Shown here piece by piece: positions 26,743-54,995 of a stretch of 64,000 nucleotides of DNA. Position 1 is the first letter of the stretch; each line of letters starts with the position of its first letter. Both the position numbers and the translations under genes were made by a program. A model generated the notes under the pieces. It was not told the DNA's origin. It saw nothing but the letters and a program-made list of their open reading frames with translations, and ran no database searches. The stretch lies in sequence record MK250021.1; one strand, written 5' to 3'.

Positions 26743-27745
26743 TAAAGATAATTAGATAATTTCAAAATATATAGAAAATAATTCTATTAAAAAGAATTGT
26801 CAATATTGGAATCATATAGATACAGATGATCAAATTTATATTAAAGATAAATTTAAACATATCAAAGATATAAAATTATCAGAATGTCTCTATATGATTC
26901 TTCATCATTTAGATAATAGGCCAATTTGTCCTATATGTCATAAAGAAATAAAACTAGAAAGATTCTCATTAGGATACAAAACATTTTGCTCTAATACATG
27001 TAAATATTCAGATAAAGGAAAACAACTTATTCATGAAAAACAAAAGGAGACATGTTTAGAAAAATATGGAGTTAATAATCCAATGAAAGATATTTCTATC
27101 AAAAATAAATCTATATCTAAATGTAAAGAAACAAATAAACGAAAATACAATGTTGAATATAATTTTCAACGTGAAGATATAAGAAAACAAATTATTCAAA
27201 CAGTAAAAAATAAAACCGGTTATGAATATGCGTTTTTAAATAAAGAAAAAGTATTATATACATTACATAATAAATATGGCTCTGGTATAGATAATGTATT
27301 TCAATTAGATAGCATTAAAGATAAATCGAATAAAACAAAAGAATTAAATAATAGTTTTAATACTTCTAAATATGAAGATTTAACATATGAAATATTAAGA
27401 GAACATTATAGTAATGTAATAAGACAATTTAAATCAGAATTATATCCATTTAATTGTGATTTTTATATTGTAGATAAAGATACATATATAGAAATAAATG
27501 CAAGTTGGACACATGGCAAACATCCATTTAATGAGGATGATTTAAATGATGTTAAACTTTATAATGAATGGATGAATAAATCAGACTATTATAAGAATTC
27601 TGCTTATAATTGGAGATTTATAGATACAAAGAAAAGGAATATTGCAAAAGAAAATAATTTAAGATATTTTGAAATATTCCCTATAAATATAGAAGATTTA
27701 AAAAATAAATTGAAAAAAATTATTCAAAAAATAGACAATTTATAA
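26735..27745 (+). CDS. Putative Vsr-like/PD-(D/E)xK homing endonuclease, 336 aa; code 15
   Basis: ATG 26735 with TAG at codon 7; CPIC, FCSNTC, CLEKYGVNNP, YPFNCDFYI..YIEINASWTHG. Confidence 0.75.
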
Positions 27746-27787: not shown

Positions 27788-28912
27788 ATGCCTAAGAAAG
27801 TTTAGTTTGAAGAATTTGAGTAGAGATTAAAAAATAAATTTGGTGATAAGTTTAAATATATTGATTTAAGTTTAATAGATAAAGAAAACTTTAATTATTT
27901 AGATAAGTATCCTATTAAATGTTTAATACATAATAAAATAGCATATAAAGAGCCGAAAATCTTTTTAAGATCTACAACATTAAATATATGTAGTAAATGT
28001 CAAAGGGAATAGCAAGTTCGTGATTCACATAAAATGCATGAAGGTAAAGAAAGACATTATACATCAGTTGATGAATTTCTAGAGCGTTTATATTAGAAAT
28101 ATAAAGATAAAATAACTATTGATAAAAATGATATTTTATTAAATAAAAATGGTTCAGTAAATTTTTCATAGAAAATGAAATTTATATGTCAAAAACATGG
28201 TGAATTTTATTGTAAACCATCCGATATATTTCGTTCAACTCATGGATGCTCAAAATGTGCTAATGAATATATGAAATTAAAAAATATTCAATATGGTGAA
28301 GAACGAAGATAGTCATTTATAAATGATGCTATTAAAATTCATGGTAATCAATATGATTATTCAAAGGTTGATATAACAGGTAAACTAAAAAAAGTTGAAA
28401 TTATATGTAAAGATCACGGTTCATTTTTTATGATGCCATCTTTACATTTAAGAGGTGAAGGTTGTAAACTTTGTAATAAAACAAATTTATTAAATTGTGA
28501 ACGACGTTTATATCAAATATTAATTGATAATTTTCCTAATGAAGAAATTATTAAATAGTATCATAACTTTTTAGGAAGACAAAGTTTAGATTTTTATTTT
28601 CCTAAATATAAAATAGGAATAGAATATCAAGGTAAGCAACATTTTGTTACTAGTGAATATTTACATAATGACACAAGGCATTCATTAAAACATTAGAAAG
28701 AACTTGATGAAAAGAAGTTCAATAAATGTAAAGAACATAATGTTACACTTTTATATTTTACATTTGATAAATAGTATGAAAATATTGAATATTACTCAAA
28801 ACTATATGTAAATATAAAAGACTTAATTGAAAAAATACAATATATAATAAATAATTACAATGTTTGCGTTAATAGTAATACAGACATTGAGCAACAAAAA
28901 TTAAATACATAA
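27788..28912 (+). CDS. Putative Vsr-like homing endonuclease with Zn-ribbon repeats, 374 aa; code 15
   Basis: CQKHGEF..GCSKC, CKDHGSF..GCKLC, SLDFYFPKYKIGIEYQGKQHF; several TAG; absent from track. Confidence 0.8.
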
Positions 28913-28918
28913 TAAATT

Positions 28919-29512
28919 ATGAGCAACAAAAAAGTAGTTGGAATTGATTTAGGTACTGGAAACAGTGCGGTAGCCATCATTGAGAATGGCGTAGCTAAAG
29001 TAATTGAAAATGCAGATGGTTATAAGACAACTCCATCTGTTGTGTACATCAAGGGTGATGAAACAAAAATTGGTGCAGCCGCAAAACGTGGTATGGTAAT
29101 GAATCCAAAGAATACCATTTCATTTGTAAAGCGTTTTATGGGTGCTAAATGGGATGATCCTGATGTACAGAAGATGTTAAAGATGGTAACATATGATGTT
29201 ATCGATGAAAATGGAAATCCTCGTCTTAAGATTGACGATAAAACATATTCACCAGAGCAAATTTCATCTATGATTCTTAAGAATATGTATGAAGTTGCAA
29301 AGGGATTCTATGGAACAGAAGATTGTAAAGACGCTGTTATTACTGTTCCTGCATGGTTTAATGATATTCAGCGTAATGCTACAAAGGTAGCAGGTCAGTT
29401 GGCTGGTTTGAATGTTCTTCGTATTATTAATGAGCCAACTGCAGCAGTTCTTTCTTCAAATATTGATACAAAATCAGGAGACAAGATTGTTCTTGTTAAT
29501 GACCTCGGTTGT
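28919..29512 (+). CDS. dnaK: DnaK (Hsp70) exon 1
   Basis: GIDLGTGNS, TTPSVV, VITVPAWF, LRIINEPTAA, ends VNDLGC. Confidence 0.95.
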
Positions 29513-29860
29513 AAACATTCTGTTACTGCATCCGCGCTTGCTGCTTAATCACTAAAGCAAGTGTAAAGTTAAAAACCCGTTAATTGCTGAGAGTCCCACG
29601 TTAGATATATACTAATGATAAAAATGGTCTTAAATACCGCTATTAGATGGTGACATACTAATTAGCACCAACTTTAATGTGTTGGGTATGGTAAAAAGTT
29701 TAAGAATTGGGTGACCGCCGTAAATCTTAAAATATATTAAGATAGAGCATCCAAGTATCTTGGTAACAAGATAAAGGTTCAACGACTAGAAAAAGTAATC
29801 CTATTAATTTAGGAAGAAATTTCCACGAATGCGGGTTAGTTTGGAAGTGGTACAAGTGAT

Positions 29861-29894
29861 ATAAGATAAATATTAAAAAGAATGTTTATCTTAT
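29861..29894 (+). promoter_or_regulatory. Hairpin covering the intron ORF start
   Basis: ataagataaatatt/aatgtttatcttat stem, TAAATA in 5' arm, ATG 29893. Confidence 0.55.
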
Positions 29895-30963
29895 GATTAA
29901 TACAGAGTTCTTTGATTTATTGATTAAACATATACTTAAATTATATGATGAAAATAATAATGAAATTAAATTTAATGAAATAACATATAAATTTGAAAAA
30001 CGAAAATTTTCATCAGTTACAAGTTTAGTTATATATGTAGATAATATATCACTAACATAGAAATAGTATCGTTCATATTTTATATTATATAAATGTAGAT
30101 GTGGTCGAGAACATAAAATATTATTACAAAAATATTTCTTAAAAAAGAAATTACATTGTATTAATTGCTGTTAGGATAGAAGTTTTGATGATTATGTAAT
30201 AGCGTATTATAAAGGTAAAATTAAAGAAAATAAACAAATAATATTAAAAGAATTTGATGAATATGATGATTAGTTTAAAGAAAATTATAAAAGAAATCAT
30301 TTATCAAATGAAGAATTTAAAAAATATTTACCTTATATTTATAAAATTAATAATCATTTAATAACAGAAGATATATTAAATAATATAGTATATTATTATA
30401 CAGAACATGTTAATAATCAATTTAAATTTACTGTTAATATTTCTTTTGATAATGGTATTACAAAAGAACCTATAAAATAGTTATATTTAAAATGTAATAC
30501 ATGTGGACGTATATTTAAAATACATACAAATAATATAAGATTACAAGATTTATCAAATATTCAATGTAGAAAATGTAAATTAGTAAATACTACATATCCT
30601 ATTAAAAAATATAAAAATACTAATATAACATATTAGTCAGGAATTGAAAAAGAATTTATTGATTTTTGCTTTTCTAATAATATTGAAATTGAAAATGGTA
30701 AAGAAATTATTTATGAATTTGATAATAAAGTAAGAACATATATAACAGATTTTTATTTACCATAGTTTAAATATATTATAGAACTTAAAGCTAAAAATAA
30801 GTTTTATAGAGATGATTTAAAATCTGGTAAAATTGAAGCAAAAAATAAGGTATGTATTGATTATTGTAATAAAAATAATTTAGAATTTAAGTTTGTGTTT
30901 GATTATGAATTAAATGAATTTAATCAATAGCTTCTAAATGAAAGAGATAGTCTTGAGGAATGA
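29893..30963 (+). CDS. Intron-encoded PD-(D/E)xK-type homing endonuclease, 356 aa; code 15
   Basis: CRCG, CNTCG, CRKC; YQSGIE...RTYITDFYLP...IELK; about 8 TAG; reads through S element to TGA. Confidence 0.8.
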
Positions 30964-31013
30964 AAGTTCCTCGGTAAGATAAAGAGCTTACAAAGTTAAA
31001 TAGAAACAAATAG

Positions 31014-32384
31014 GGTACAGAGGATGTTTCTATTGTTGAGATTTCTGATGGTATGATTGAGGTTCTTGCATCTGATGGTGATGTGTTCCTTGGCGGTCAG
31101 AATTATGATAATGCCATTGTTCAGTGGCTTATCGATGAGTTTAAGAAAGATACAGGTATTGATTTGAGTAAGGATAAGATGGCATATGCACGTCTTGTAG
31201 AGGCAGCAGAGAAAGCAAAGTGTGAGTTGTCAACTACTACTCAGACAGAGATTAACCTTCCTTATATTACTGTATCTGATGGTGTTCCTCAGATGTTGAT
31301 TAAGACTCTTAATCGCGCTACATTTGAGAGACTTACAGAAGATCTTACAAATAAGGTTGTAGAGATTGCACATCGTGCTGTAGAGAAGGCAGGTATTACA
31401 GAGGATCAGATTAGTGAGATTCTTCTTGTTGGCGGCTCTTCACGTATTCCTTCAGTTCAGGATGCATTGGAGAAGTCATTTAACAAACCTTTGAATAAGA
31501 CCTGTAATTTTGATGAGGCTGTTGCACTTGGTGCTGCTATTCAGGCAAATACACTTGCAGGTAATGCAACAGAGGATTCAGTACTTCTTTTGGATGTTAC
31601 ACCAATTTCACTTGGTATTGAGGTAAATGGTTGTGAGATGGCTAAGTTGATTGAAGCTAATACAACTATTCCTACACGTAAGTCACAGACATTTACAACT
31701 GCAGTAGATAATCAACCAGCTGTAACTATTAAGGTACTTCAGGGTGAACGTCCAATGTCCGCTGATAATAAGGTAATTGGTACATTTAATTTGGAGGGTA
31801 TTGCACCAGCTCCTAAGGGTGTTCCTCAGATTGAAGTAACATTTGATATTAATGCGGATGGTATTCTTGAAGTAACTGCAAAGGATAAGGGTACAAATAA
31901 GGAACAGAAGGTAACAATTCAGTCTCCTAACGCACTTTCTGATGAAGAGATTGCACGTATTAAGGCAGATGCTGAGAAGTTTGCAGAAGCAGATAAGAAG
32001 AAGAAAGAGGAAGTTGATAAGTTGAATACTGCAGAACAATATGCAACACAGGTTCAGAAGTATATTGATGATGAGAAAACAGGTGCATCTGTTCCATCTG
32101 ATAAGAAAGAAACATTGAAGACAAAGATTACTGCAGTTCTTGATGCAGTTTCTAAGAAGGATGTATCAGCAGCAGAGACTGCACGTGCAGATCTTGAAAC
32201 TGTATTTAAACCTATTGTTGAGGAAATGTATAAGAATGCAGGTGGTGCAACAGCAGGTCAACCTCAGAATGAATCACAGGGAAATCCATTTGCTAATGCA
32301 GGATTTGGTGATGCAAATGCTTCAACTTCTGATACTAAGGCAGATGATGACGTTCAAGAGGCAGATTTTGAGGAAGTAAAGTAA
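31014..32384 (+). CDS. dnaK: DnaK exon 2 (spliced product 654 aa)
   Basis: GTEDVS, LGGQNYD, LLVGGSSRIP, LLLDVTPISLG, GVPQIEVTFDI. Confidence 0.95.
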   Translation, partial: GTEDVSIVEISDGMIEVLASDGDVFLGGQNYDNAIVQWLIDEFKKDTGIDLSKDKMAYARLVEAAEKAKCELSTTTQTEINLPYITVSDGVPQMLIKTLNRATFERLTEDLTNKVVEIAHRAVEKAGITEDQISEILLVGGSSRIPSVQDALEKSFNKPLNKTCNFDEAVALGAAIQANTLAGNATEDSVLLLDVTPISLGIEVNGCEMAKLIEANTTIPTRKSQTFTTAVDNQPAVTIKVLQGERPMSADNKVIGTFNLEGIAPAPKGVPQIEVTFDINADGILEVTAKDKGTNKEQKVTIQSPNALSDEEIARIKADAEKFAEADKKKKEEVDKLNTAEQYATQVQKYIDDEKTGASVPSDKKETLKTKITAVLDAVSKKDVSAAETARADLETVFKPIVEEMYKNAGGATAGQPQNESQGNPFANAGFGDANASTSDTKADDDVQEADFEEVK

Positions 32385-32568: not shown

Positions 32569-33657
32569 ATGACAAAAGACTTGTATGATATATTAGGTAT
32601 TGAGAAAGGTTGTAATGATCAGAAAAAGATTAAAACTGCATTTAGACAACTTTCTAAGAAATACCATCCAGATATGCAGAGAGGAAAATCAGATGCAGAG
32701 GTAAAGGAAGCTGAGGAAAAGTTTAAGGATGTTAACCATGCATATGAAGTTTTGAGTGATCCTCAAAAGAAAGAGAATTATGATAATTTTGGTGATGAAA
32801 ATGGAAGACCAAATCCATTTGGTGGTTCCGGTGGTTTTAATCCATTTGGTGGTGATTTTGATCCATTTGGAGGATTTAATCCATTTGGAGGATTTGGTGG
32901 AAGTTCACGTCAGAAGAAAAATCAGGTTCAACCAGGTAGGGATATTCAGATGAAGATTCCTGTATCTATTGAAGATATATTTAAGGGAGTTAAGAAGAGT
33001 GTTAAATTTAAGAGAAACGTAAGGTGTTCTGTATGTCATGGTGCAGGTGGAACTGGTCAGAAGACATGTCCAAAGTGTCATGGAACTGGTAGAATTATTC
33101 ATCAGCAGCAATTTGCAATGGGGTCATTCTCTATTCATGAAGAAGTTTGTCCATTGTGTCATGGAACTGGTTTTTATGTAGAGAACAAATGTGATAAGTG
33201 TGGTGGTTCTGGATTTGATAAGAAAGAAGTAAAACTTGATATTGAATTACCATCTGGAGTACAGAATGGAGAATATCGTGTATATAGTGGTGAAGGATCC
33301 GAATCAAAGAATATTTCAGGACCTAATGGTAATTTTATCGCTATTGCAGATTATACGTTTGATACAGATAGGTATCAGGTTGATGGGTTGAATGTAGTTG
33401 AACATATTCATGTCCCTTATTATAAATTGTTGCTTGGCTGTTCATATACTCTTAATATTCCTTCTGGTGTAAGTAAGGTTGTTAAGTTGAAGAGTTGTAT
33501 TAAGGAAGGAACAATTATGAGATTAACCGGCGAAGGACTTAAGAGGTCTGATGGCCAAAAGGGTGATTACTTCATTTGTGTTCATTATCAATTTCCAGAA
33601 GACCTTAGTGCGAATGATAGAGCATTGCTTGAAGTTATAGAGAAAAACAATAAATAA
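32569..33657 (+). CDS. dnaJ: DnaJ
   Basis: J domain with HPD, G/F region, four CxxCxGxG repeats. Confidence 0.95.
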   Translation: MTKDLYDILGIEKGCNDQKKIKTAFRQLSKKYHPDMQRGKSDAEVKEAEEKFKDVNHAYEVLSDPQKKENYDNFGDENGRPNPFGGSGGFNPFGGDFDPFGGFNPFGGFGGSSRQKKNQVQPGRDIQMKIPVSIEDIFKGVKKSVKFKRNVRCSVCHGAGGTGQKTCPKCHGTGRIIHQQQFAMGSFSIHEEVCPLCHGTGFYVENKCDKCGGSGFDKKEVKLDIELPSGVQNGEYRVYSGEGSESKNISGPNGNFIAIADYTFDTDRYQVDGLNVVEHIHVPYYKLLLGCSYTLNIPSGVSKVVKLKSCIKEGTIMRLTGEGLKRSDGQKGDYFICVHYQFPEDLSANDRALLEVIEKNNK

Positions 33658-43546: not shown

Positions 43547-43618
43547 TGGGGATTAGTATAGTGGTCAGTACAGAGGTCTCTAAAACCTTTAGGCCGAGTT
43601 CGAGTCTCGGATCCCCAA
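43547..43618 (+). tRNA. Amber suppressor tRNA (anticodon CTA), Gln-type
   Basis: TGGGGAT/ATCCCCA acceptor, loop ctCTAaa (43580-82), T arm ccgag-ttcgagt-ctcgg. Confidence 0.95.
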
Positions 43619-43660
43619 CAATTAAATGACATAAGTAATATTTTAAAGATTTGATGAATT

Positions 43661-45474: not shown

Positions 45475-45881
45475 GGGGATGAATTTGGATTTGCTTATTA
45501 ATTATGTGGTAATAAATCGTGTAGGAAAGTTAATAGCCTTTTGTAGTAATACAAAGAAACTTAGCAAATAAATTTAAATGACGACGAAATAGAATTTCGT
45601 ATGGCAGCTTAATCCTGATAGGATTGGTAATATACACCCATTGAAGCATTTGCTCCTTATACGGTAAGTTTGAGCATTGCCACGGAGTTCGTAAGAGTGA
45701 TAATCTCTGTTAAATAAAACTCTTACATATACTTATTCATTGTCCAATAAGAGTGATTATGACATTAAACTGTTTAACTCTAATAACACAGATATAAATG
45801 AAAACTAATAAAGACATACGCACGTAGATAGTTTATTATTGACATGTTAGTAATACGTGGTTTCGAGTACCACCATCTCCA
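45475..45881 (+). ncRNA. ssrA: tmRNA
   Basis: GGGGATG/CATCTCC acceptor with G3.U70, GGATTTG, T arm gtggt-ttcgagt-accac, tag ORF 45580-45612 DDEIEFRMAA-TAA. Confidence 0.92.
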
Positions 45882-46020
45882 CATTTTTAGATTATATTTC
45901 ATAATATAGAATTTTTAATTGTTTAATTTTGTAAATGAGTTGTATGTTTAGATAAACATATGACTCATTTTTTTGTATAATAATAAATAAGATAATAAAA
46001 CTAAATATAAGCATAAATAT

Positions 46021-52014: not shown

Positions 52015-52087
52015 GGTCCGTCTGGTGTAATTGGTAACATGACAGATTGTGGTTCTGTTGTTCAGGGTTCGAGCCCCTAACGTGACC
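52015..52087 (+). tRNA. tRNA-His(GTG), irregular acceptor stem
   Basis: acaga-ttGTGgt-tctgt; G-1:C73. Confidence 0.8.
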
Positions 52088-52106
52088 CAAAATATTATTA
52101 ATATTT

Positions 52107-52183
52107 AGCGTAGTGGCCCAGTTGGTCTAAGGCACCTGTTTTGGGAACAGGTTAGATCGCACGTTCGAATCGTGTCTACGCTA
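52107..52183 (+). tRNA. tRNA-Pro(TGG)
   Basis: agcgtag/ctacgct; cctgt-ttTGGga-acagg. Confidence 0.92.
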
Positions 52184-52297
52184 CAGAATAGAGTTCTTAT
52201 GTTATCCTTACATAACTAAAAGAACTAAAACTTAAGATGGTAAGGCATCTATATAATGGAAGTTCACGCCCAAGGGAAGATTTATAAGTTATAATTT

Positions 52298-52372
52298 ACT
52301 CTGTTAACTCAATTGGATTAGAGTATTTCGCTACGAACGAAAAGGTTGTGAGTTCGATTCTTACACAGAGTA
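52298..52372 (+). tRNA. tRNA-Arg(ACG)
   Basis: actctgt/acagagt; tttcg-ctACGaa-cgaaa. Confidence 0.92.
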
Positions 52373-52381
52373 CAAGTAAAT

Positions 52382-52454
52382 ATCTCTATAGCTCAAAAGA
52401 ATAGAGCAGTTCTCTCCTAAAGAACAGATAACAGTTTGATTCTGTTTGGAGATA
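52382..52454 (+). tRNA. tRNA-Arg(CCT)
   Basis: atctcta/tggagat; gttct-ctCCTaa-agaac; T loop TTTGATT. Confidence 0.85.
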
Positions 52455-52541
52455 CAAACAAAATTAACATTATTAATATAGACTTTTATCTATTAATTGA
52501 ATATATTATAATGTAATTTGAATTTTAAATACTATTAAAAT

Positions 52542-52950
52542 GTAGGGGAGTAGAGTTCCCATCATTTAAAGAGTTTCGAGAAGAAGGTATTGTATGTAAA
52601 AGCATTAAGTTTCGTTTAGCTGACGAAATGTGACCACGCGGTGATGGTATTCATGTACATAGGTCCATCCGTATAACTTCAGGGAATCGTAAGCATTAAT
52701 CTTGGCGAGTACAGTTTTTAGTCTGAAATGACGAATTTTCCTACTGGTTGCTCAATATGATATTAAGAGTCGGAGATAATTATTTGTAAGTTCCACAATT
52801 ACGAGAGGAAAATGGAATTAAGTTGAAGGAATAACGTGATTATTCTTGGTGTGATTAGGAGAACGAAAATAACCAGTATGTATGGTGTACGTGTGCATAC
52901 AGAAACAAAGCAAATAATAGCCCTTAGAGAATTTGCCGAGTAAAGGACAT
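52542..52950 (+). ncRNA. Unidentified structured non-coding region
   Basis: GC-richer, several hairpins, closing stem 52542-49/52737-44. Confidence 0.45.
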
Positions 52951-52971
52951 TAATAGTATTTTTATTTATTT

Positions 52972-53049
52972 GCAGTATTGGTGTAGCTGGAGGCGCATTC
53001 CTGACTTCCACTCAGGCGGCTTGCGCGAGTTCGATTCTCGCATACTGCT
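52972..53049 (+). tRNA. tRNA-Gly(TCC)
   Basis: gcagtat/atactgc; cctga-ctTCCac-tcagg; U73. Confidence 0.92.
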
Positions 53050-53123
53050 CATAATAAGGTAGAGTATCAATGAATGATAGAGAATAAGTTCCTGTCTGAG
53101 ATCAACCTATCTGTAGTATTTAG

Positions 53124-53149
53124 ATAATTTTATGTATACATAAAATTAT
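53124..53149. repeat. Perfect 26-bp palindrome
   Basis: ataattttatgta|tacataaaattat. Confidence 0.9.
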
Positions 53150-53258
53150 AACGAAGTTTATATTACCTGTAGTCGTAATATTCAAATCGTTCGTTGACAT
53201 AGTTATTCCGTGATGTAGTAGAGAGTTATAATCAGCATATAACAGACGGAATATTTTT

Positions 53259-53331
53259 GCGGAAGTATATCAATGGTTAGATAGATACGTTGCCAACGTA
53301 TAGGTTGTGAGTTCGAGTCTCATTTTCCGCT
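53259..53331 (+). tRNA. tRNA-Gly(GCC)
   Basis: gcggaag/tttccgc; atacg-ttGCCaa-cgtat; U73. Confidence 0.92.
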
Positions 53332-53474
53332 CTATAAACGTTTCGAGGTTTTAAAGTTGAATGTACCACCTTGCGCTTGTGTTACTATTCACCTTTGAGT
53401 AATAGTAAAAAACTTATGGTATCAAGGATGTTTTCTACGTTGTTACATCCATTTTTTTGAATATGATAGAATAT

Positions 53475-53621
53475 GAGAGTCAATACAGCAAATTAAATTG
53501 ATAGATAATGTTTGAAGATTATACACAAAAAGACTCTTGAATCAAATTATAATGGGAGGCAATACAGCAAATTTTGTATTAAGGATTATTTTGCTAAAAT
53601 AATATTCTATACGCCTCCTGA
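53475..53621 (+). repeat. Two tandem structured AATACAGCAAATT elements
   Basis: 13-nt identical core, different but self-complementary closing stems, each followed by TGA. Confidence 0.75.
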
Positions 53622-53626
53622 TACTT

Positions 53627-53710
53627 GACGAGTTGCTGAGAATTGGTTAATCGCACGATCTGCAAAATCGTTGGTCATATGACATGTCGGTTCGAGTCCG
53701 ACACTCGTCT
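53627..53710 (+). tRNA. tRNA-Cys(GCA) with long variable arm
   Basis: gacgagt/actcgtc; acgat-ctGCAaa-atcgt; 14-nt variable region; U73. Confidence 0.88.
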
Positions 53711-53743
53711 CTTTAGATTAATATTTTAAAATACTATTATAAG

Positions 53744-54004
53744 ATGAAGAAATTATTTTCTTTTATATTTTGTACAATAATGATTACATCATTATTTGGA
53801 TGTGCAACAAAACAAGATACAATTAGTTACCTTGATAATTATGTACATAAAAATATTTCTGAAAATTGTATAAACATTTTCAGTAATCAAAGATATAATG
53901 AATATATTGATACTGTTACTAATATTAAATATTATGTTTATATAGATTATAATAGTAACATCAATATAATAGATAAAAGATTTCCGAGGTATACAGCTCG
54001 TTAA
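53744..54004 (+). CDS. Small putative lipoprotein
   Basis: MKKLFSFIF...LFGC lipobox-like. Confidence 0.65.
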   Translation: MKKLFSFIFCTIMITSLFGCATKQDTISYLDNYVHKNISENCINIFSNQRYNEYIDTVTNIKYYVYIDYNSNINIIDKRFPRYTAR

Positions 54005-54302
54005 AAGAGGTTGACTTGTATATTCTACATTACCTACTGTATAACAATATATGAGTGTACATGTGAAAAGATACACCATGTTCTATTAATATAAAAATGT
54101 ACATATATAGGGTAACAATTATATTAATATCAGATGCATGACATATATGAATATAATAACGAATTCGTGAAATGACTATTGTTTTTAGTTGCTTGGAAAC
54201 GGCGAACTTAGTTTTATCAATAGAGGAAGTATAATATTAAAACAGTTAAATGTAAATCTTTCTGAGACAATGGGGACAACTTGTAGTAAGAGAGTATTTT
54301 TA

Positions 54303-54417
54303 GCTAGTATAGTTTAGTGGCAAAACACCCAAATCCCAGGGATAAGAGATGGTTTGAGTTGTAGTGTACAATACAATATACAGAAGATTTTAGTGAGTTC
54401 GATTCTCACTGCTAGCT
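54303..54417 (+). ncRNA. tRNA-like RNA with expanded anticodon/variable region
   Basis: Acceptor gctagta/tgctagc, D arm and T arm intact; ~65 nt between D and T arms. Confidence 0.7.
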
Positions 54418-54423
54418 CAATAT

Positions 54424-54551
54424 GAAGTGCGTAGTTTAAATGGTAAAACATCCTTTGAGTAGGACTCTGACGAGAGATAGATAACAATGCTAGACTCTAT
54501 TTAATTCCATTGTTTTATTAATGAGTATAGGTTCGAATCCTATGGTACTTC
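54424..54551 (+). ncRNA. tRNA-like RNA with multi-stem insert replacing anticodon arm
   Basis: gaagtgc/gtacttc, D arm and T arm atagg-ttcgaat-cctat intact; ~76-nt insert. Confidence 0.7.
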
Positions 54552-54841
54552 CAAATTTATATAGATAAAAAGATTCTGGTGATTAGATAAAACATTATAA
54601 GAAAAGAGAAAAAACTTAGGTAACTGCAGATAACTAAGGGTCGTAAGAGTATATGAAGAAAGATGAACTATGGATACCTCCTTATAATGCGTTTTATCAA
54701 TAATTAAAGTAGTCTATAATATAAGTTCATTAACGTTATAGAAAAAACGAATATTGATAAGTCTACTATGCAGATGGGGCATTGAGAATGCCGTATAGTT
54801 CTAAAGCATCGTAAAACAGTTTATTTATATATTTTTAATAT

Positions 54842-54916
54842 GGCTAGATAGCTCAGTTCGGTTAGAGCGCGTGATTCATATCCACGAGGTCGTGTGTTCG
54901 ATCCACACTCTTGCTA
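54842..54916 (+). tRNA. tRNA-Met or Ile2 (CAT)
   Basis: ggctaga/tcttgct; loop ttCATat; T arm gtgtg-ttcgatc-cacac. Confidence 0.85.
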
Positions 54917-54995
54917 CAGTGTTTTTAGTTGTTTATTAATGATTTGAGATATATCAATTTTTGGTATATCTCTTTTTTATTTAGAAAATAATTTG

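Follow-up and report, generated by a model that had tools for sequence, protein, structure and literature searches.

An intron-encoded ssrA-like tail on a DnaK fragment in a Prevotella megaphage

In a Lak-B Prevotella megaphage, dnaK was split by a group I intron, and reading on from exon 1 into the unspliced intron added 11 residues, KHSVTASALAA, followed by TAA. The ALAA ending was the same as that of the ssrA tag in 26 of 31 sampled genomes of the host order, Bacteroidales. Ala-Ala endings of this kind were clearly over-represented in about 300 other group I introns. A hard-coded degron for products of unspliced RNA was the best-supported reading (probability about 0.55), although it was inferred from sequence alone. 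A link between group I introns and ssrA, degrons, ClpXP, tmRNA or Ala tails was not found in full-text searches, and the reading appeared undescribed in the searchable literature. The window analyzed was a 64,000-nucleotide stretch of sequence record MK250021.1.

The dnaK intron and its read-through tail

The dnaK region of the window was 100% identical to that of Prevotella phages Lak-B1, B2, B3, B5, B6, and B9, and about 91% identical to that of Lak-C1. Lak phages are TAG-recoded megaphages of Prevotella (bioRxiv 10.1101/2021.08.26.457843). The features of the locus and its context, all on the plus strand, were as follows.

28919–29512 (+), dnaK exon 1, 198 aa, the N-terminal half of the nucleotide-binding domain
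29506–29512 (+), P1 5' strand, the last seven exon bases, with U29512 as the splice-site U
29513–31013 (+), group I intron, 1501 nt, IA-type core, ending in G31013
29513–29548 (+), read-through extension KHSVTASALAA plus the TAA stop (29546–29548)
29520–29527 (+), putative P10 strand, pairing with the first bases of exon 2 (31014–31020)
29528–29534 (+), internal guide sequence (P1 3' strand), encoding A-S-(A)
29535–29563 (+), P2 hairpin, with the 5' strand (29535–29542) encoding (A)-L-A, the loop (29543–29555) holding the last Ala codon and TAA, and the 3' strand at 29556–29563
29582–29593 (+), P4 5' strand (classical P element), matching the P4 pattern used in the survey
29776–29788 (+), R element (P7 5' strand region), GGTTCAACGACTA
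29893–30963 (+), intron ORF, 356 aa, endonuclease-like, with eight in-frame TAG codons read as Gln
30942–30952 (+), S element (P7 3' strand), one mismatch to AAGATATAGTC
31014–32384 (+), dnaK exon 2
43547–43619 (+), amber suppressor tRNA (anticodon CUA), found by ARAGORN and Rfam
45475–45884 (+), phage-encoded tmRNA, with the tag frame at 45580–45612

The sequence-only reading had claimed that unspliced RNA encodes a tail ending in ALAA-stop and that the same bases form P1, P10, and P2. This observation was correct. The table-11 ORF 28919–29548 ended ...VNDLGCKHSVTASALAA and then TAA, and TAA remains a stop under the TAG recoding of the phage. The read-through product would contain the junction peptide ...NDLGCKHSVTASALAA. 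The assumed exon/intron boundary (29512|29513) was exact. Intron-less dnaK copies in Lak-A1 and in two IMG/VR contigs (L008 and L009) read ...NDLGC|GTEDVS, while the window, Lak-C1, and Lak-B4 carried an insert exactly between those codons (C198 and G199). The NCBIfam DnaK model NF001413 matched exon 1 at profile positions 2–192 (E = 1e-67) and exon 2 at 194–622 (E = 9e-156). The profile was thus contiguous across the two exons, and removal of the insert restored the reading frame.

The insert was identified as a group I intron from the junction, the core elements, and similarity to known phage introns. A U-G wobble (U29512 with G29528) was present at the 5' splice site within P1, and the last intron base was G. 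Of the conserved core elements P, Q, R, and S, the P4 strand, R, and S were each located. The R element was the only exact match in the window and was the segment shared with Staphylococcus phage introns. The core was similar to Twort-like Staphylococcus phage introns, to an intron in crAss-like phage cr108_1, and to one in huge phage LR756504. The Rfam model RF00028 gave no hit at E ≤ 10 in the window intron, no hit at E ≤ 1 in the ORF-less 584-nt form in Lak-B4, and nothing usable in the nearest virus record. Since this model is known to miss many IA introns, the result was not taken as exclusion. A search for RNA evidence of splicing found no run on record as RNA that held the locus, so self-splicing is inferred.

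The intron ORF matched the endonuclease family phrog_15137 (E = 5e-7). Both dnaK exons had no in-frame TAG codons, and the endonuclease can be made only after the code switch, once the suppressor tRNA is active. Borges et al. describe the same logic for an Agate-phage intron. In Lak-B4 (positions 1095–1678 of its locus), Lak-B7, and Lak-B8, a natural deletion of almost the whole ORF left a 584-nt intron with an intact core and the same 5' tail, with H changed to Y. Lak-A phages lacked the intron altogether. A free-standing homing-endonuclease-like ORF (26894–27745 (+), phrog_3339, E = 9e-12) and two short zinc-ribbon-like ORF fragments (28175–28312 and 28430–28558 (+)) lay just upstream of dnaK. 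A DnaJ-like ORF (32569–33657 (+)) with a J domain, a Gly/Phe-rich stretch, and four CxxCxGxG zinc motifs lay directly downstream. The phage therefore carries its own Hsp70/Hsp40 pair. A 115-nt Rfam tRNA match at 54303–54417 (+) (37.5 bits), within the tRNA cluster at 52015–54917, was not called by ARAGORN and may be a tRNA with an insertion.

The overlap with RNA helices also held. An unconstrained fold of 29503–29566 recovered P1 and P2 (−17.1 kcal/mol, z = −2.8). P1 paired 29506–29512 with 29528–29534, including the U-G wobble and one U-U mismatch. P2 paired 29535–29542 with 29556–29563 as an 8–9 bp helix. In the dnaK-intron copy L010, A29556 was changed to G, which kept the pair as U-G. P10 (29520–29527 with 31014–31020, one bulged U) was paired by eye only and is inferred. 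The codons mapped as K-H in the P1 loop, S-V-T on the putative P10 strand, A-S-(A) on the guide sequence, (A)-L-A on the P2 5' strand, and the last A and TAA in the P2 loop.

To compare the tail with host tags, tmRNA genes were extracted from 31 sampled Bacteroidales genomes and their tags were read with ARAGORN. Twenty-six tags ended in ALAA, all 31 ended in AA, and GENNYALAA was the commonest; the agreement applies to the order rather than to Prevotella individually. The Bacteroides tag GETNYALAA fused to a fluorescent protein (GFP) caused near-complete signal loss in B. thetaiotaomicron (bioRxiv 10.1101/2025.03.18.644028). The tmRNA of the phage itself scored just at the Rfam gathering score (RF00023, 47.3 against 47 bits) and was not called by ARAGORN. 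Its tag, read from the alignment to the consensus resume codon, was (A)DDEIEFRMAA-stop, with the ending MAA instead of the host-order ALAA.

Ala-Ala endings in related and other group I introns

The sequence-only reading had proposed to examine homologous dnaK introns and to look for LAA-stop enrichment in other phage group I introns, and both tests came out more positive than negative. All intron-bearing Lak-type dnaK copies kept the tail. It was identical in the copies L005–L007, V was synonymous in Lak-C1 and L010, and H became Y in Lak-B4. These copies were more than 94% identical there, with too little divergence to be informative on conservation. The cr108_1 intron stopped at once, and the LR756504 intron stopped after K-L. 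Other introns of the same family lay in the anaerobic ribonucleotide reductase gene nrdD, with one in Lak-C1, two in Lak-B4, and neither in Lak-A1. Intron A, which had an HNH-type ORF between the splice site and P3, closed the frame with a TAA that spans the splice site. Intron B (Lak-B4 only) added NQSAA and then two stops.

Six introns (survey loci L519, L521, L551, L430, L095, and L365) sat at the same codon (DLGG|GT) of eukaryote-type Hsp70 genes on giant-virus-like contigs. Their guide sequence covaried with the exon (GGUGGU/GCYUCC there against GGUUGU/GCAUCC in the Lak intron) and kept the same U-U mismatch. Two ended in Ala-Ala through quite different sequence (KHNSAAAAA-stop and KQDAHAA-stop), with the tail in an expanded P1 loop. 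Four ended in ...CC, ...SC, or ...AF. The frame was thus partly kept. These viruses infect eukaryotes, where ssrA and ClpXP do not apply, although Ala tails are degrons there too. The shared site suggested that one intron lineage homes to this conserved Hsp70/DnaK motif in both phages and giant viruses.

For the survey, IMG/VR was scanned four times with core patterns, and the metagenome and genome collections were scanned once each. For every site with a P4-like and an R-like element, the ORF of at least 60 codons whose stop lay no more than 130 nt upstream of P4 was taken, and near-duplicates were removed. The Lak intron itself was not in these sets. A total of 298 non-redundant introns were obtained. 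Whole-ribozyme single-linkage clustering merged nearly everything at low thresholds, so exon-protein families (216) were used to collapse the set. An automatic P1/5'-splice-site finder picked spurious long pairings and was used for no count. The pipeline was ad hoc, and its counts rest on splice sites that were not individually verified.

Read-through ended in Ala-Ala in 31 of the 298 introns, and about 90% had no such end. In the viral set (n = 168), the endings were AA 10, LAA 5, VA 6, and LVA 2. Among 5287 ordinary ORF ends in the same loci, they were AA 38 (0.72%), LAA 5 (0.09%), VA 38, and LVA 4. Fisher p was 1.4e-6 for AA and 5.8e-6 for LAA, and LAA was enriched about 30-fold. AA was found in 7 of 69 introns of the metagenome set and 14 of 61 of the genome set. 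Of the 216 families, 13 were AA-majority (binomial p = 9e-9) and 3 were LAA-majority (p = 0.001). Each collection alone gave p ≤ 1e-4. A single ALAA found after the fact could still be chance; it was the broader survey that made chance unlikely.

The effect of RNA composition was investigated on the same sequences. Stop triplets in the other two frames of the same 5' regions were preceded by AA in 3 of 1334 cases. The first stop met in the +1 or +2 frame, read from 12–30 nt upstream, was preceded by AA in 0 of 443–515 cases. Overall, off-frame and pseudo-read-through controls gave 0–0.4% AA, against 10% in frame. GC dinucleotides before the true stop peaked only at offsets −3 and −6 (13.7% each), while offsets −2, −4, −5, −7, and −8 gave 2–4%, the same as off-frame. 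The excess was therefore in codon register, and general G+C richness of the helices was rejected as its explanation.

Leu preceded AA in 6 of 17 AA families, against a 9.5% background (p = 0.004). The pentapeptides included WALAA, YALAA, NFLAA, LTLAA, KTLAA, GSLAA, ITMAA, AFLVA, and RPLVA. An unbiased E. coli screen found terminal Ala-Ala in 91% of the top 100 C-terminal degrons, the consensus [LFYW][LAR]LAA, and FKLVA as the best tag (PMC10862746), consistent with the LAA and LVA endings. Ser at position −5, as in the Lak tail, was not favored in that screen. The Ala-Ala end was reached by different RNA parts in different introns: the P2 stem (Lak), the guide sequence (survey loci L066, L119, and L319, and Lak nrdD intron B with SAA), and the P1 loop (L139, L444, L519, and L521). 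A second recurrent read-through ending, ...CC or ...ACC before TAA (TGTTGTTAA-like), was seen in several unrelated exon families (survey loci such as L032, L073, L365, and L551) and is unexplained.

The known flagellin intron of Bacillaceae read ...SRIRDVD|YALAA-stop where intron-less flagellins read ...DVD|MAKEM. Its 13 copies gave YALAA (4), YAEAA (2), YTEAA, HTEAA, YAFAA, YVLAAA, YVLSAA, EVLAA, and YALTA. In the 12 copies that ended in AA, the last two codons were always GC at positions 1–2 and varied only at position 3, while the opposite strand of the hairpin changed to match. This pattern is what a helix that must also spell Ala-Ala would show. In 13 Bacillaceae loci (L526, L567, L584, and ten others), a second group I-like core (P4 and R elements) began about 55 nt after the normal flagellin stop codon (...VLQLLR-stop), separate from the intron at DVD|MAKEM.

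Interpretation and comparison with known systems

In the favored reading, the first 36 bases of the intron do two jobs. As RNA, they form the P10 strand, the guide sequence, and the 5' strand and loop of P2, which are needed for splicing. As message, they would be read by any ribosome that reaches the end of exon 1 before the intron is removed. Such a ribosome would add KHSVTASALAA and terminate in the P2 loop before it can invade the catalytic core, a role for an early in-frame stop that is already accepted. The product would be the first 198 residues of DnaK, half a nucleotide-binding domain, with a free C-terminal ALAA. The host ClpXP, or another protease that reads ssrA tags, would then destroy the fragment. 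The analysis established the reading frame, the stop, the helices, identity with the host-order tag ending, and the statistical excess of such endings across group I introns. That the tail is recognized, that it shortens the life of the fragment through ClpXP, and that this is why it is kept are inferences. The earlier interpretation, that truncated DnaK tags itself for destruction, was partly supported.

The main alternative is that ALAA is a by-product without effect on fitness. The intron needs an early in-frame stop, a known general feature near the 5' splice site (PMC3984707), and G+C-rich P1/P2 helices, from which Ala codons (GCN) may fall out, with UAA from A/U-rich loops. All eleven codons overlapped P10, P1, and P2, and every base of the tail is also under RNA constraint. 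Most introns lacked an Ala-Ala end, including the closest ribozyme relatives, Lak nrdD intron A, and four of the six same-site Hsp70 introns. Several Ala-Ala introns also shared a 5' module (guide GCNG, then C-Y, then URA, then a GNRA hairpin) that may be inherited rather than independently evolved. This reading was considered less likely than a degron because of the frame controls, the codon register, and the Leu enrichment at −3, and because the Ala-Ala end also occurred in P1 loops, which have little structural constraint. By our own count, only 16 of the 1408 hexamers with four or more G or C are GCNGCN, so G+C richness alone predicts about 1%.

A still less likely possibility is that Ala-Ala-stop is selected for translation, for example for fast, clean termination and ribosome release, so that P1/P2 can refold and the intron can splice. 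Splicing of phage introns depends on ribosome behavior at the exon-intron border (PMC3984707), and a termination-context effect would also produce a bias in codon register next to the stop. However, no known termination rule favors Leu-Ala-Ala specifically, the enriched pentapeptides matched the ClpX optimum, including LVA, and a termination model does not predict the match to the host-order tag ending. An RNA-level or termination-level cause of the bias is not excluded, and half a nucleotide-binding domain may be unstable without any tag. A functional short isoform of DnaK was very unlikely. No evidence for it was found beyond a long ORF that would be translated, exon 1 stops in the middle of the conserved DLGGGTFD phosphate-binding motif, and intron-less Lak-A phages have no such product.

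A more general rule remains tentative: a sizeable minority of group I introns in protein-coding genes of phages and bacteria may hard-code an ssrA-like or Ala-tail C-degron just before the first in-frame stop. The same may hold in giant viruses. Exon-1 fragments made from unspliced RNA would then be destroyed by a cis-encoded protein quality-control device carried by a mobile intron. Group I introns are thought to survive in genes by being nearly cost-free. With coupled transcription and translation, ribosomes regularly read into unspliced introns, and a truncated chaperone, flagellin, capsid protein, or reductase can be harmful. A built-in degron would be a new way for a mobile element to reduce its cost to the host, and a third route, beside tmRNA and RqcH, by which bacteria-type cells mark incomplete proteins with C-terminal alanines. 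It would also be a clear case of one short sequence selected both as RNA helix and as peptide, and it suggests tags tuned to particular hosts for use in Bacteroidales and other non-model bacteria.

The Geobacillus/Bacillaceae flagellin intron (Hayakawa and Ishizuka, cited in PMC3984707) had the same core type, with the Ala-Ala codons in the 5' strand of a hairpin and the stop in the loop, but a different host gene and phylum. No statement that its read-through peptide resembles ssrA was found in the searchable literature. In group I introns of phages and bacteria with early in-frame stops, such as T4 td, the read-through ORF is likewise closed before the catalytic core, which is held to keep ribosomes out of the ribozyme (PMC3984707). 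That literature discusses only the stop and not the added residues, which here, and in about 6% of the exon families surveyed, form an ssrA-like ending. In RqcH Ala-tailing in Bacillus, and in natural ClpX substrates with LAA-like C-termini, a C-terminal alanine run marks an aberrant product for ClpXP. Those tails are added after translation stalls or belong to full-length proteins, whereas the Lak tail would mark the product of an unspliced RNA. In trans-translation, tmRNA likewise gives an incomplete protein ending in ALAA, the ending read by ClpXP, and its stop codon also sits in a hairpin loop. The Lak tail, however, is not a tmRNA-added tag. It is encoded in cis, contiguous with exon 1 in the DNA, and would be added by ordinary elongation on an intact mRNA, with no need for a stalled ribosome, SmpB, or tmRNA and with no SspB-type upstream part.
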